From positions 29,844 through 65,028 of the forward strand of contig MU619392.1 of NCBI GenBank assembly GCA_025201805.1: 35,185 nucleotides of DNA, in the 5' to 3' direction. The notes beneath the pieces are model-generated. The model had not been told where the DNA came from. It saw only the letters and a program-made list of their open reading frames with translations, and did no database searches. Each line of letters opens with the position of its first letter. Within the stretch, counting starts at the first letter, position 1. Origin of the DNA: Parasitella parasitica NRRL 2501 (lineage: Eukaryota > Fungi > Mucoromycota). Position numbers and translations under genes: made by a program. Below are positions 1,813-9,438 of this stretch, piece after piece.

Positions 1813-4800
1813 ATGGCAGAGTGTTTATCAGATCTCACTCAAGAATTTGACGTTGGTCTGCTGGATCAAGTTGTCGTTACCTTTTACTCAAGTACTGGCG
1901 ATGCTGTGAAGTGCTGAGACACTTTTTTTATGCATTGCAATCCTAACCGATAAATATAGAGACGAACAGCAGAAGAAATATTAACTCGGTTACAAGAAGA
2001 TGAGGAAGCATGGAACCGTGTCGATACTATTCTTGAGAAATCAACAGTACCTGAAACCAAGGTGAGTTTACAATGATGCATTTGAGTTCCACCTTTGATA
2101 CCAATATCATGCAGTTTATAGCTTTGCAGATCATGGATAAGTTTATACGGACACGGTGGAATACTTTACAGCCTGGAGTCAAGGATGGTAAGAGATAATT
2201 AAATCTAACTCGTCTGTCAACTTAATGTTCTTGAATTCAGCTACCCGAAATTTTATTGTCGACGTTATCGTCAAAGTGTCATCAGATGAAATTACATTTA
2301 AGAAGGAACACATTTTCGTGGGCAAACTCAACATGGTACTTGTTCAAGTGAGTTCTAGTTTCTCTTTATAAATGGTTCAAGTCATTTAGTAAAGTTTTCT
2401 TTCTTAGATATTAAAGCAAGACTGGCCTCATAATTGGCCATGTTTTATCCTAGAGATTGTTTCTTCCAGCCACGCAAATTTAACATTATGCGAAAATAAT
2501 ATGGCCATTTTGAAGGTTCTCAGTGAAGAAATTTTTGACTATTCCGCTGACCAAATGACACAACTAAAGACGTCTAACTTACGACAGTTGATGTGTAACG
2601 AATTTTCAGAAATATTCAAATTATGCAAAGAGATTCTTGAGAAGGCGACCAAACCAAGTTTAATCAAAGCAACATTAGACACTCTGTTGAGGTTTCTCAC
2701 TTGGATTCCTATCGGTTATATATTTGAGACAAATTTGCTTGATATACTTAAGAACGTTTGTCTTTTATTTTAATATATAGTGAATGCGCTGCCCTAACTC
2801 ACAGTTTTGTTAGATTTTCGAATCGCCAATGTATCGTAACTCAACACTTAAATGCTTGATTGAAATTGGAAGCCTTTCTGCAGTCAGCAATAATTACAGT
2901 CAAAAAATTATCATTTTATTCGCTCAAGTCATATCGACAGTGTACACTGTCATTCCTCCTCATATCGAGATTTCCACTATCTATGAAGAGAGCAGTGATG
3001 ACGACCAAGAATTTGTACAGAATTTAGCTTTGTTTTTGACGAGTTTTCTGTCTTCCCATTTGAGAAATTTGGAACAGTCTTCTGATAAACAAGCATTGCA
3101 AGCTTTACTGAACGCTCATTTTTATCTTCTTAGAATAACTCAAGTGCAAGATCGAGAAATCTTCAAAATTTGTTTAGAATATTGGGCTAAACTAGTTCGA
3201 AAACTCTTCGAAGAAAGTCTTGTACCACTACACTGTCAATCTCGATCTCGTAATCAAGACAATTTTAGCAAAAAGTGCATTACTTACGATAATGTATTAT
3301 CGAGATTACGTGTGATAATGATTGAAACAATGGCGAAACCAGAAGAAGTTTTGATTGTTGAAAATGAAGAAGGAGAACTTGTACGTGAGTTTGTCAAGGA
3401 AAGCGACACAATCGTCTTGTACAAGAGCATGAAAGAAGTGTTAGTTTTTTTGACTAATTTGGATGTTATTGATACAGCAAATATTATGAAAAAGAAATTA
3501 AAAAATCAAACGAGTGGCACGAAGTGGTCCCGGCAGGACATGAATCGATTATGCTGGGCTATTGGATCTATATCTGGTGCTATGCCCGAAGATTTTGAAA
3601 AGAGCTTCTTGATGGATGTCATTAAATATTTATTAGATCTTTGCGAAACAAATAGAGATAAAAATAACAAAGCCGCAATTGCCTCTAACATCATGTATAT
3701 AGTGGGTCAATATCCTCGTTTCCTGAAGACACATTGGAAGTTTCTCAGGATAGTCATTAATAAGCTAATTGAATTTATGCATGAAGCTCACGACGGTGTT
3801 CAAGATATGGCTTGTGATACTTTTCTTAAAATATCTCGAGAATGCAAAAGATGTTTTGTTACTACAAGTGTTGGGGAAGTTCGTCCACTTGTTGTTGAAA
3901 TCATTGAAAAAATTTCTCAAACTACATCCGAACTCTCCCCTCAACAAATCTATACTTTTTACGAAGCAGTTGCTTATATGGTTTTAGCAGAAATTGATAA
4001 AACTAGACAAGAGCAACTGATACACATGCTCTTGCAAATACCCAACGGATCATGGTACCAAATCATGGGCGACTGCAAGAATGGCATCGATGTTTTGAAC
4101 AATGCTGGCCAAGTTAAAGTATTATCACATGTGCTAAAGACAAATGTCTCTGTATGTGTGGCAATCGGACCAGGTTTCGTCAGTCAATTAGGCAAGATAT
4201 ATTCTGACCTATTGGCTTTGTACCGTGCTGCTGGTGTCATTGTGTCAGATTTGGAAATTGATCAAGGTAAACTTTTATGATGCGCACTTGTTAAAAATAT
4301 GGCTAAAATTTTTATGGTTATCGTAGGATTTGTTGCTGTGAGAACAACCAAAGTGCGCGCGTTAAGAAGTATCAAAAAAGATGTTCTTAAGTTGATTTAT
4401 GCTTTTATTGAAAATGCAACGGATTTAGCCTATGTTGCTGAATTCATGGTCAATCCCTTTTTATATTCAGTGTTATCCGATTACAAAAATACTATGGATA
4501 TTGCTAGAGATGCAGAGGTCTTAACTTCTTTAGCTATGATGATCACCAAATTAGGGGTAAACTATATGCGTCTGATCCATTGAATTGTACACTAATCGAT
4601 ATCAAGCCTTTAATGAAACCGTGTATTTCATTAGTGTTTGAAGCTACATTTGAACCTACTCTTAATATGATTACAGCGAATTTCATAGATTTTCCCGAGA
4701 TTCGAAGTGGATTTTATAAATTATTGAGGGCTGTCAACGCCAAGTGCTTTCCAGGTATATAGAGGTTATTCTTTGTTGAATGGTTTAGCTGACTTTTACA

Positions 4801-5526
4801 TAAATTCAACTTAGCTTTATTAGAACTTTCACCTGAACGATTCAAACTGTTTATCGATAGTATAATTTGGGGCTTCAAACATACAATGCGTGATATTGCA
4901 GACATAAGTCTTTACACATGTGAAGAGTTGCTTTTAAATGTTCGACAAACTGATGATATCAATGCCGGTGCATTCTTTCGATCATATTATCTCACTATTT
5001 TGCAAGACGTACTCTCTGTATTGACAGATTGTGATCATAAAAGCGGATTCAAAGGACAGACAGAAGTTTTGGCACAGCTGTTTCAACTAGTTGCTAATGA
5101 CTGCATCAAAATAACTTTGTTTGATACCTCTCAAACGACTGATCCCTATATGTCAAATGCTCAATTTTTGAATCAATATGTATCAGCCTTGCTTCAAAAT
5201 GCATTTCCACATTTAAAAAGGTAACCATCAACTAAGTATGCCACATAAATCTCCTCTAATTTACAAGAATTAGCAAACAAATTAAGAGTTTTGTTAAGGC
5301 CATGATGGAATACAACATTGTATTGCCAAAATTCAAGTTGGAAGTTCGAGATTTCCTTAATCAGCTGAAAGAATTTACAGGTGAAAATGCAGAGCTGTAT
5401 CTGGAAGAAAAAAAGGCCGAAATGAACGAAAAGAAAAGACAAGAGAAAGAGAAAGTTCTGCTAGTCCCTGGTGTGATCAAACCATCTGATTTGACGGTTA
5501 AAGAAGTAGATGTTTCGATCAAATGA
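1813..5526 (+). CDS. CRM1: Exportin-1 (CRM1/XPO1), multi-exon
   Basis: ATG at 1813 (MAECLSDLTQEFDVGLLDQVV). Hallmark motifs QILKQDWPHNWP, LSEEIFDYS, KPEEVLIVENEEGELVREF, LCWAIGSISGAM, NIMYIVGQYPRFL, HWKFL, GVQDMACDTF, VRDFLNQLKEF, VPGVIKP. About 9 short GT-AG introns; stop at 5524-5526. Confidence 0.97.
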
Positions 5527-6253
5527 GAATGTAGGGCATTGTAATTACGCTTATGTTAGAACATAAAGAAATGCATATTCTCTATTTAAACAGATAAGCG
5601 CTGCTTATTATTATTATGAAGTTGGTGATGGAATAAAAAGCAAAATAAACAAGAACAAATAATCAGAGATTACACAGGGGCGCTTTCATTCATCTACTAT
5701 AATTCCAATGATTATAGTTTTGTTGATTTAATGCCTAAGATTAAATGTAAATTTATAAGAGCCATTGATCTGTATTATATTATTTAACGAATAACATTAG
5801 TAAACATCAAATTACGATTTGTAATATAGAAGAGATCATTGTCATTTTATTCAGTGCCAATTTTATTTTTTTATGAATTTCTTTAGCAAATGAATCGAAG
5901 TGGAATAGGGTGAAGCGGAGTCGAGCACCTGGTAATCGATCTAAAAGAATCTGGAACATTTCTATTTAAGACTAATTGCCGTTTTACAGACTAGGAGAAT
6001 TCTTTATGCATTGGATGCCAGTTTTTTGTACTATACTATACATTTGATGAAATTATAATACTACAAAAATCTATTTTAAGGTTGGGAAATGCAGCCCACA
6101 TCATACCATTATCATGATAATCAGTATTTCCATTTATTTATGAAGATTTTTAGTGTATATTCTAAACCATATATGTCAAACTACCCTGCATGCCACAAGA
6201 GAAAGATCTCATCTACGAACTGCAAAAAGTCACAGAAAAAATTTCTGTTCTAG

Positions 6254-6261
6254 TATAAATA
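6254..6261 (+). promoter_or_regulatory. Candidate TATA box of SPE2, implying a 5' leader of roughly 350 nt
   Basis: TATAAATA about 415 bp upstream of the SPE2 ATG, followed by a pyrimidine-rich tract. Confidence 0.45.
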
Positions 6262-6430
6262 CTAAATGTGAGAACAACATGAGTCTTCTTCATCTCATCA
6301 ATAATACTCTTCATTTTTTTTTTATTCCTTTGTCTTATATTTCACAGTATAGGAATGAGTATTTATTCCAAGCACACCAATTCTTCGAATTCAAATCTTT
6401 AATCAAACAAATCCCTGTTATATACTTGCT

Positions 6431-6517
6431 ATGCCAATAGATTATTATACAAATAATTTAGTCCGTTACTTGATCAGCTTACCTTTCCGGCTCCATTTCT
6501 CTAACTTTTGGCCTTGA
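6431..6517 (+). promoter_or_regulatory. Upstream ORF (28 aa, MPIDYYTNNLVRYLISLPFRLHFSNFWP*) in the putative SPE2 leader
   Basis: Open frame from ATG 6431 to TGA 6515-6517, ending about 150 nt upstream of the main ATG; the last codons are Trp-Pro-stop. Confidence 0.55.
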
Positions 6518-6668
6518 CATATATCACTTCCAAATCAACCTCCTAATTAATTAATTATTTCAACTATTTCTTATTCAAAAAAAACCTTCCAAAAACTTAC
6601 ATTTATTAGCACCTGACAATCCAGATTTTTTCCTATAAACCCTTATATTCAAACTCCCATATTTTGCA

Positions 6669-8327
6669 ATGGCCTACAACTCGCTTCCTCAACCTCCTCC
6701 TGCTCCTCCTCCTGTCTCAGGAACGAATTATTCAGCCGAACATGGCTGCTTTGAAGGACCAGAGAAATTACTAGAAATATGGTTCTCTCCCACGCCTTCT
6801 TTTGGTCGTTTCGATGCCAACGGTGCAGATTCTTTATCAACATCTCTTACAAACTCTGATTCTGAAGAAGTATCAGATGAATCCAATCCAACCACTCCAA
6901 ATGAACCTCAAATGAATCTTTCTTTGGGATATTCTCAAGACCTCCGAACCGTGGAGCGCTCTTTATGGGACTCTATGCTCGCCACTGTCAAATGTACAGT
7001 TCTCAGTGTTGTCAGCAATGGGCATGTAGATGCTTATTTATTAAGGTAAATTTGATATACTGTATCTGTTTTTTTTTTCTTTTTATGCATCTAGGAACAT
7101 ATATTGTGTGTTTGCGTGCTGCTTCTTGGCTTATTTTTTAATCAAAACAAAAATCAATGTCGCTCATACCCAAATCTTCTTCCATTCTCCAGTGAGTCCT
7201 CCATGTTTGTATTTCCACACAAGATCGTGCTCAAGACTTGTGGTACTACCACTCTTCTCAAGGCTGTACCTTATATCCTGGAAATTGCAAAAACTCGTTG
7301 TGGATACGAAAGTGTCTATCGTTTATTCTATTCCAGAAAGTCGTTCATGTTTCCTGAAAAGCAACTAGGTCCTCACAGGAGTTGGGAAGAAGAAGTTAGC
7401 TATTTGGATAATCACTTTGGTAAGTCTATGATAAACACCTAAAAAGGAGGGAATCTAATACTGGGTTTAGACAATGGCGCTTCTTATGTCATTGGCAATA
7501 CAAACGCTGAAGAATGGTATCTCTATTTGACCTCACCCGCTACAACCCAGCATCAAAATCATCTTATTGAAAACTTGACTGATATGAGACAGTTGATAAA
7601 GGAAACTGAAGGTTTATCTTGGATGAGCAACTCTGTGGATGAATTTGCTCCTTGGAACAATACACCAAATATTGGTGAAACTAAATCACCAGTTGCTGCT
7701 GCTACTACCAATGCACCGGGACATCACAATGGTAATGGCAGTAACTTCTATCATAAAGCGTCCGCTGTTCATAGTTACCGTACATATGATGAAACTATTG
7801 AGATACTTATGACCAACTTGGACATGAAAGCCATGGAAGCCTTTTATCAACGTTGCGATGAGCCTAGTGGTCTTGTAGGAGGTAAACGTATTGATTCGGA
7901 AACTGGCCTCGATCAACTTTACCCAGAAGCCAATGTCGATTCTTACATGTTTGAGCCTTGTGGTTATTCTTGCAATGGGTTATCTGAAGATGGTTATTAT
8001 ACAATTCATTGTGCTCCTGAGGAACAGTGCTCCTATGCTTCATTTGAAACTACAATTCCTGTCAAACCTGTAGATACCCCTGGTAAGAATGGTCATGGCC
8101 ACGAGGAGGCTATTCGCAAACTTATTCGTCAAGTTGTGGATATCTTTCAACCTGGTTCCTTTACTGTTACTTATTTCGCTTCTCATTGTGACGTGAACCA
8201 ACAAGTTGATAATGTTAGTAGACTTGTACGTACTGTCGATCAGTTTGGTGGCTACAGACGTAAAGATAAAATTCTTCATGAATTTGAAGGTTATGACCTT
8301 ATTTTTGGTCATTTTACAAGACTTTAG
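6669..8327 (+). CDS. SPE2: S-adenosylmethionine decarboxylase proenzyme; exons 6669-7045, 7193-7419, 7471-8327
   Basis: Motifs [12 protein letters not shown], spliced AYLLSESSMFV (pyruvoyl self-cleavage E|S), [41 protein letters not shown]. Confidence 0.97.
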
Positions 8328-8784
8328 TTTTACTTTCGATGTTCCATTTGAGCATCGCATATATGATTATACTCTTTTATTTCTCTCTATTCATACTTAT
8401 AACAATAAACAAAGACCTTTTAACTACAACACTTGATGATGGATACAAATTAGACAAACTTCTGCAGTACCAAATCAGTGTCGATGGGCTCTGGTTGGCA
8501 CGTAAAGCGTAAAAACTTGCGCGCTTTGTGTAACAACATCCTAAAATCCATGCAAATCATCTTAGCCTCCATAAAAGTGTGCCATGCTATTTCTTTCGTC
8601 AAGAATATTTGATGTTATGCATCTATAAGCACTCTTTATTAAATTTATAGATATATTACTGTCAGAACCTGACAAAATCACTGCGATTATTCAACCTCTG
8701 ATATTTTAATTGCAGCACCTTGCTATAAAAAGTTACCAGCAGAATACTTTGCTGGACCTTCTTTTCATTGAAACGCATACCATA

Positions 8785-9438
8785 ATGGACGAGTTTCCCT
8801 CAGGATATTTTTACATCAAATCTCGTACCTCTGGGAAAGTGATTGATGGTAAATTTGATGATAGATTGTAAGTTGATATCTATTAACTCATGTACTACTT
8901 GTAGTCGACGGGGCATCCACAAAAGTAAGATATTTTGTTTATCAACGATATGACGATGGCTTAACAATTCGCAGAACGATGGGAAAATACTAATATGGAC
9001 ACCCAAGCACAACGACGATCGAGACAACCAACTATGGTATTATCAGGTATAAAAAAATCTCTGAAAAACTCTAGTATATGACATGTTGAATTAAACAGGA
9101 CAGTCCAGGATGGATTTATAGTGAATAAATGCTCAGGCAAAGTGCTGGATGTGCGAGGTGGCCCGCTTGCAGACGACGCTTGGATTTGTCAATACGATCG
9201 TAAAAAAATTAGCGAAGCTCAAAATCAACGTTGGGGGTATGAAGATGGATTCATTTATACGCTAGCAGACCCTCACATGGTGCTTGATGTGCGTAATAAT
9301 TCAACAGCAGACGGGACACGAGTGATATTACACCACAAAAAGTTTAGTTATGACAATATGGATCAACTTTGGGATTTGACACCTGCTGGTCAAGTGAGAG
9401 CAGAGAGAGAAGTTTTATTCGAAGCAGATTTTGAATAG
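8785..9438 (+). CDS. Small ricin-B-type (beta-trefoil) lectin-domain protein, 4 exons including a 20-nt exon at 8905-8924
   Basis: Spliced product MDEFPSGYFYIKSRTSGKVIDVDGASTKNDGKILIW..DNQLWYYQDGFIVNKCSGKVLDVRGG..NQRW..VLDVR..DQLW, with three QxW repeats and no signal peptide. Confidence 0.88.

Follow-up and report, generated by a model that had tools for sequence, protein, structure and literature searches.

AdoMetDC catalyses the committed step toward spermidine and spermine. The leader of the AdoMetDC gene described here carries a 28-codon AUG-initiated ORF, called uORF2 below, that raises two questions: whether the encoded peptide controls translation of the enzyme, and, if it does, what it responds to. 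AdoMetDC translation is under the control of peptide uORFs in vertebrates and plants (PMC2811004). By itself, a 28-codon ORF is not improbable in an AT-rich leader, with roughly 0.2 expected per AUG as estimated from composition; what exceeds chance for uORF2 is its conservation in relatives. The window, that is, the whole stretch of 35,185 nucleotides that was analysed, contains the gene together with its leader and promoter. A preliminary description had proposed that uORF2 encodes a polyamine-sensing arrest peptide ending in Trp-Pro-stop, and we examine here the gene, the conservation of the peptide, the organization of the leader, and the alternative explanations.

The ATG at 6669 opens a three-exon AdoMetDC gene of the SPE2 type, with the PF01536 domain, on the + strand, and the assignment of this ATG in the preliminary description is borne out by a PF01536 match in each exon. 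The exons were searched one by one, not as a joined protein. Exon 1 (6669..7045, E 4.1e-15) is followed by a GT at 7046, exon 2 (7193..7419, E 3.2e-34) is flanked by an AG at 7191-7192 and a GT at 7420, and exon 3 (7471..8327, E 6.6e-51) extends to the stop codon. The proenzyme cleavage motif LLSESSMF straddles the first intron, so that exon 2 starts inside LSESS. Exon 3 is 83% identical to the AdoMetDC of Parasitella parasitica and 80% identical to that of Mucor circinelloides, which places the window in a fungus of the Mucoraceae. A second, divergent AdoMetDC paralogue is present in the same genome at G000:C4:133,730-135,160 (loci L015, L018, and L019), and other Mucorales also have two AdoMetDC paralogues, with ~39% identity. 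The leader of the C4 paralogue has no ATG in its last 220 nt and lacks a copy of uORF2.

Upstream of the gene, the sequence TATAAATA at 6254..6261 (+ strand), read directly, is the TATA box of the AdoMetDC promoter, at the position given for it in the preliminary description. An aligned (G/A)TATAAA(T/A)A is found in Parasitella, M. circinelloides, M. lusitanicus, M. mucedo, and Rhizopus. Because the G content of the + strand drops to 0-12% from about 6300, ~40 nt past the TATA box, the sequence fits a transcript start shortly 3' of this element, and we place the inferred TSS there. Two blocks just 5' of the TATA box, AGATCTCATCTAC (6205-6217) and GTCACAGAAAAAATTTCT (6230-6247), are candidate transcription-factor sites; both are common to Parasitella and partly to M. 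circinelloides and M. lusitanicus. A 53-codon AUG ORF in another frame (6279-6441) spans the first uORF of the leader and overlaps the start of uORF2 by 11 nt. It is probably untranscribed or fortuitous, since its AUG lies 18 nt past the TATA box and is missing in Parasitella.

uORF2 occupies positions 6431..6517 of the + strand, ~175 nt 3' of the TATA box and behind a first uORF. Read from the sequence, it has 28 codons, MPIDYYTNNLVRYLISLPFRLHFSNFWP, followed by UGA. The stop codon is the TGA at 6515-6517, with a C next at 6518, and 151 nt separate it from the main AdoMetDC ATG; the ATG at 6431, the 28 sense codons, and the TGA followed by C are all as first described. The conserved core of the peptide comprises codons 9-28 (6455..6514) and reads NNLVRYLISLPFRLHFSNFW followed by a variable last residue, which is encoded at 6512-6514 and is Pro in the window. 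The initiation context is weak, and the weakness is itself conserved: T at -1 and C at +4 are found in all 13 leaders that were compared, and position -3 is G, C, or T and never A. The main AdoMetDC AUG, for comparison, has A at -1 in all leaders and A at -3 in most. In Backusella, the canonical uORF2 ATG is changed to ATA and an in-frame ATG is present three codons upstream; both ATGs are found in several species. The termination context, UGA-CAU (6515..6520), is likewise conserved, with TGA in 12 leaders, TAG in Umbelopsis, and CAT next in all 13. A C at +4 is the least efficient termination context. Past the stop-CAT, the frame shows no conservation and runs for 4-23 codons before it closes. 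A read-through product had been given as HISLPNQPPN-stop, which is the correct continuation in the window; the extension is not conserved beyond its His, where the frames differ between species, and read-through was rejected as a candidate on that account. A Pfam search of the uORF2 peptide returned no match, and a degenerate pattern of the core occurs once in the genome (32.8 Mb, 450 contigs), with no second copy.

Orthologous loci from 12 named species were compared, with M. circinelloides represented by two assemblies. The resulting set of 13 leaders comes from nine genera of Mucorales, from Umbelopsis, and from a single metagenome contig: Parasitella, M. circinelloides, M. lusitanicus, M. 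mucedo, M. hiemalis, Rhizopus delemar, Thamnidium, Backusella, Phycomyces, Cunninghamella, Lichtheimia, Umbelopsis, and the Rhizopus-like contig. The same uORF is found in 13/13 leaders, 75-350 nt 5' of the AdoMetDC start, and it is 28 codons long in 12 of them. The family consensus is M-x-[IL]-D-Y-Y-T-NNLVR[YF]LISLPFRLHFSNFW-S-stop, in which the C-terminal 20 residues (NNLVR[YF]LISLPFRLHFSNFW and the last position) are nearly invariant; Phycomyces has a more diverged form, ending SVPFRLHCDYWS-stop. A metagenome scan with the degenerate core retrieved the Rhizopus-like contig alone, which is genomic, and yielded no further lineage and no transcript evidence. uORF2 remains linked to AdoMetDC despite a change of flanking genes from family to family: the gene upstream of the locus is CRM1 in Mucoraceae, an eIF5/eIF2B-family gene in Lichtheimia, and MTP18 in Umbelopsis. 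The order CRM1/exportin-1, AdoMetDC, RicinB-lectin, SNF2/RING helicase is common to Parasitella, M. circinelloides, and M. lusitanicus, and the ORFs of the window at about 2800-5530 and 8700-9000, judged as ORFs alone, are compatible with the CRM1 to SNF2/RING helicase order. The lineage-wide element that had been anticipated is thus found across Mucoromycotina, and its presence in both Mucorales and Umbelopsidales suggests that uORF2 is very old.

The pattern of substitution in these leaders is that of a constrained peptide. Among the 20 core codons (9-28) of 12 species, 5 vary at codon position 1, 2 at position 2, and 17 at position 3; for position 3 to take at least 17 of the 24 variable sites by chance has a binomial probability of 2e-4. 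The mean pairwise pS of the core is 0.535 and the mean pN is 0.030, for a pN/pS of 0.055, compared with 0.36 in codons 2-8, where the N-terminus is relaxed. Between the window and Umbelopsis, the core shows 13 synonymous and 3 non-synonymous differences, and the synonymous sites are essentially saturated. At the nucleotide level, identity averages 0.85 across the core versus 0.36-0.38 in the 60-nt flanks (anchored, ungapped), and the leader around uORF2 is unalignable, at about 37% identity. Frame 0 is the sole frame open in all species. Conservation rises toward the C-terminus and ends exactly at the stop codon. The core even surpasses the enzyme it precedes: 18/20 residues are identical between the window and Umbelopsis, against 36% for exon 3. 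In the general sense of the term, uORF2 is a conserved-peptide uORF (CPuORF), and, on the pattern of its substitutions, it is under peptide-level purifying selection that is concentrated on the C-terminus and stop context. The arrest-peptide-like constraint anticipated in the preliminary description is thereby recovered, and the alignment of the leaders yields amino-acid-level conservation of the C-terminus with a synonymous bias; a fixed Pro before the stop, which had also been expected, is not found.

A few codons of the core vary less than their neighbours. The Arg20 codon (6488-6490) is CGG in 12/13 leaders, although a crude sampling of long ORFs of the window shows CGG to be the least used Arg codon (7%). 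Phe19 (TTC, 6485-6487) and Asn25 (AAC, 6503-6505) have no synonymous variation in any leader. These frozen codons leave room for an added nucleotide-level constraint, and the three positions could reflect either such a constraint or a conserved slow codon. A leader intron starting at the GTCCGT at 6461 had been raised as a possibility and is unlikely: the hexamer corresponds to Val-Arg codons that vary only synonymously (GTC/GTA/GTT and CGT/CGA), and the intron would remove the best-conserved residues of uORF2.

The last residue of the peptide requires separate treatment. It is Ser in 11/13 leaders, Pro in the window, and Arg in Umbelopsis, whereas the penultimate residue is Trp in 13/13. The Trp-Pro-UGA-C ending emphasized at first is therefore real in the window and is not a feature of the family, whose members end W-S-stop in 11 leaders and W-R-stop in Umbelopsis. 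The terminal Pro is absent from the other 12 leaders and known from one assembly. The uORF of the window and that of Parasitella are identical at 86/87 nt and differ by a single T-to-C change (TCT to CCT), and the terminal Pro is, judged by the aligned leaders, a lineage-specific replacement of the usual Ser. Because W-P-stop is private to one genome, the argument built on eIF5A and proline has no comparative support. Since Ser, Pro, and Arg all occur at this position, the exact identity of the last residue is not critical. Since peptidyl-tRNA(Pro) is a poor release substrate, the terminal Pro should keep or strengthen a termination stall. The natural S/P/R variation at the last codon provides a ready-made allelic series.

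uORF2 does not stand alone in the leader. A shorter uORF1 (6355..6402, + strand) encodes 15 codons, MSIYSKHTNSSNSNL, and ends with a TAA stop; it is separated from the uORF2 AUG by a spacer of 28 nt (6403..6430). A homologous uORF1 of 15-22 codons is found in nine species from Mucoraceae to Backusella, and in all nine the gap to uORF2 is 17-43 nt. Its start context is near-invariant, a(g/c)gaATG(a/g), and its peptide is partly conserved, M-x-I-x-F ... LNS-x-L-stop. In more distant taxa some uORF, at most a possible homologue of uORF1, lies upstream of uORF2. On the other side of uORF2, the 151-nt spacer to the main AUG (6518..6668) is G-poor (3% G) and contains neither ATG nor GT; eight relatives also have no GT in this interval, a further point against the leader intron. 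The spacers of 13 species contain 0 ATG in 2,590 nt, where 11.0 are expected from composition, and shuffles of these spacers matched zero ATG in 0/2000 cases. The G content of the spacer is 1-5% across species and 12% in Umbelopsis. These AUG-free, G-poor spacers resemble a scanned, unstructured leader, which argues that uORF2 and the main ORF lie on one transcript.

Conservation of the peptide throughout Mucorales and Umbelopsis, exceeding that of the enzyme, makes uORF2 very probably a ribosome-stalling translational switch. The relaxed N-terminus and constrained C-terminus form the gradient that one would predict if the peptide acts in the exit tunnel. The tunnel has room for 30-40 residues, and in the gpUL4 and arg-2 peptides it is contacted by the last 16-19 residues (PMC5587730). 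From the C-terminal gradient, the fixed length, and the invariant stop-CAU, we infer that stalling would occur at termination; for the AdoMetDC of mammals and plants, the established mechanism is a peptide-dependent, polyamine-responsive stall at the stop codon of the uORF, according to PMC2811004 and the literature cited in PMC5587730. We consider it likely that uORF2 is translated and acts in cis, as a conserved-peptide uORF of the AdoMetDC mRNA that arrests ribosomes at its own stop codon.

In the mechanism that we propose, some scanning ribosomes would initiate at the weak-context AUG of uORF2. Upon reaching the stop, the last ~20 nascent residues (NNLVRYLISLPFRLHFSNFW-x) would fill the exit tunnel and slow peptide release, with the help of the conserved poor terminator context UGA/UAG-C-A-U. 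The stalled 80S would block later scanning ribosomes, possibly trigger mRNA decay, and lower initiation at the AdoMetDC AUG 151 nt downstream. If uORF2 behaves like its counterparts in the AdoMetDC mRNAs of mammals and plants, spermidine or spermine would be expected to strengthen the stall, resulting in feedback control. uORF1 would have an opposing role: it has a better start context than uORF2 and ends 28 nt before the uORF2 AUG, a distance that would be too short for efficient reinitiation at uORF2. Ribosomes leaving uORF1 would probably rescan, pass over uORF2, and initiate again at the main AUG, a further 240 nt downstream. uORF1 may thus shield uORF2, resembling the plant 'tiny' uORF.

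A polyamine response of uORF2 is probable given the gene that it controls (PF01536) and the mammalian and plant precedents. The uORF2 family is devoid of the PP, PPW, and PS motifs tied to eIF5A, and it lacks the penultimate Pro noted by Ivanov et al. in nearly all AdoMetDC uORFs. A more specific reading, which we put forward tentatively and as somewhat short of probable, is that uORF2 is an independently evolved, very old nascent-peptide sensor of polyamines without the proline/eIF5A motifs that mark all other polyamine-pathway uORFs described, gated by a shielding uORF1, in which an aromatic, Trp-terminated tunnel segment (LPFRLHFSNFW) would act together with a hard-wired weak terminator, UGA-CAU.

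Comparison with known systems helps to define what is particular to uORF2. The closest parallel is the pair of 'tiny' and 'small' uORFs of plant AdoMetDC (CPuORF homology group 3), located in the leader of the same enzyme, where the 3' uORF is peptide-conserved and the 5' uORF is short and poorly conserved, as are uORF2 and uORF1. The plant model, in which the 5' uORF lets ribosomes avoid the inhibitory uORF (PMC2811004), has the same logic as that proposed for uORF1. The plant small uORF is reported to arrest ribosomes at its stop codon (Uchiyama-Kadokura 2014, as cited in PMC5587730) and ends Ser-stop (PS-stop), as does the Mucoromycotina consensus. The two systems differ in their dimensions: the plant small uORF has 48-55 codons and a penultimate Pro (PMC2811004), whereas uORF2 has 28 codons and a penultimate Trp, and the tiny uORF has 2-3 codons and a one-nt overlap with the small uORF, whereas uORF1 has 15-22 codons and lies 17-43 nt upstream. 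Judged from descriptions and without alignment, no sequence resemblance between the plant uORF and uORF2 is apparent. The vertebrate AMD1 MAGDIS peptide is also encoded in an AdoMetDC mRNA, ends Ser-stop, and causes a stall that is peptide-dependent and enhanced by polyamines (PMC2811004). MAGDIS is a hexapeptide whose uORF lies about 14 nt from the cap and acts in part through occlusion of the cap-proximal AUG; uORF2, in contrast, encodes 28 residues with a 20-residue core, far from the cap and behind uORF1. A peptide of similar size is found in fungi, the arginine attenuator peptide of arg-2/CPA1, which stalls ribosomes at the uORF stop in response to the end-product of the pathway and contacts the tunnel with its C-terminal ~19 residues (PMC5587730). 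It belongs to another gene, has another ligand, and is unrelated to uORF2 in sequence.

Within polyamine metabolism, the upstream conserved coding regions (uCCs) of ODC and AZIN1 and the HOL1 uORF of S. cerevisiae resemble uORF2 in having conserved C-terminal motifs in leaders of the polyamine pathway. The uCCs start at near-cognate codons, and uCC and HOL1 depend on PPW or PS-stop and eIF5A, whereas uORF2 starts with AUG, has no Pro-Pro, and has its only conserved Pro 10 residues from the end. The terminal Ser-stop of the uORF2 consensus echoes MAGDIS, the plant PS-stop, HOL1 (MLLLPS-stop), and the uCCs (PS-stop). The ODC leader of the same genome contains an AUG-less conserved coding stretch ending TASETRLADSLFDRRGFPPWLS-stop, with stop TAA-A (G000:C122, L023 reverse complement, ~885-977). 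This stretch (ending GFPPWLS-stop) is located ~550 nt 5' of the ODC ORF and agrees with the 'Zygomycota' ODC uCC as described by Ivanov et al.; its Trp-Leu-Ser-stop resembles the Phe-Trp-Ser-stop of the AdoMetDC uORF consensus. In Pezizomycotina, the AdoMetDC leader has two uORFs and translational repression (Li & Breaker 2017, PMC5640933), as proposed for uORF1 and uORF2. That system also has an 11-bp SDC hairpin just 5' of the ORF and uORFs with a penultimate Pro; in the uORF2 leaders, we found no such hairpin, no covariation support, and no Rfam match, the presence of SDC in Rfam 15 being unchecked. Compared by described features, uORF2 fits no described AdoMetDC, ODC, or HOL1 uORF family, in agreement with the preliminary description, which had set it apart from MAGDIS, the plant small uORF, the AZIN1/ODC uCC, and HOL1.

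The alternatives to a polyamine-responsive arrest differ in how much of this evidence they account for. All of the conservation of uORF2 fits equally well a peptide-dependent arrest with an effector other than polyamines, be it constitutive or responsive to SAM, decarboxylated SAM, methionine, or putrescine. uORF2 is without any Pro-based motif linked to polyamine or eIF5A sensing, and SAM-sensing nascent peptides exist in plants, where CGS1 is a nascent-peptide sensor of SAM. We nonetheless regard a non-polyamine effector as unlikely, given that the AdoMetDC uORFs examined so far in mammals and plants are polyamine-responsive and that the genome keeps an ODC upstream conserved coding region ending PPWLS-stop; the retention of this uCC indicates that polyamine-type translational control is used in the lineage.

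Two further explanations dispense with arrest altogether. The strong purifying selection on the peptide would be equally expected of a trans-acting micropeptide co-transcribed with AdoMetDC, and cis and trans action are not separable by computation. Such a micropeptide would leave unexplained the stop context, the weak AUG, and the AUG-free spacer, which are features of the mRNA, as well as a conservation gradient that rises to the C-terminus and stops at the stop codon. The peptide, moreover, has no Pfam match, its one genomic copy is always 75-350 nt before AdoMetDC, and the AdoMetDC paralogue is without it, all of which makes a trans role very improbable. The conserved block may instead be an RNA or DNA element that is merely open, such as a spermidine-binding structure, an SDC-type hairpin, or a transcription-factor site. 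The AdoMetDC leaders of fungi are known to contain regulatory RNA elements (PMC6961545; PMC5640933), including a spermidine-binding leader structure reported for S. pombe spe2, and the few codons frozen at the third position (TTC-CGG, AAC) would agree with such an element. The substitutions, on the other hand, are mostly at third positions and almost all synonymous, and the frame is open in 13/13 leaders with the start codon kept or replaced. Folding gives the same answer: the RNAalifold consensus of 12 leaders has an energy of -1.9 kcal/mol and contains a single covarying pair, the leader folded as a single sequence is no more stable than its shuffled versions (z +0.32), and an Rfam search gave no match at E up to 10. 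We consider an RNA or DNA element the most remote of these explanations, with hardly any likelihood.

The reading of uORF2 as an arrest peptide of AdoMetDC mRNA can be set against what is known of such elements. AdoMetDC uORFs are known in metazoa, Pezizomycotina, plants, algae, and diatoms (Ivanov, Atkins and Michael), and only the ODC uCC is mentioned there for Zygomycota. In the literature searched, which left many subscription papers and the supplements of Ivanov et al. outside, the string LPFRLHF was not found, no uORF was described in Mucorales, and the only papers in which uORFs appeared alongside Mucor or Rhizopus as well as polyamine or AdoMetDC terms were general reviews. uORF2 would add a further independent origin of AdoMetDC peptide uORFs and would break the 'penultimate proline' regularity of Ivanov et al. 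Its compact, well-defined 20-residue core is an arrest candidate for studying the mechanism by which ribosomes sense small molecules, and the polyamine-sensor reading, if true, would define a new class of eukaryotic arrest peptides that respond to small molecules. Mucorales include industrial species and the agents of mucormycosis, and uORF2 offers a testable handle on polyamine homeostasis in these fungi.
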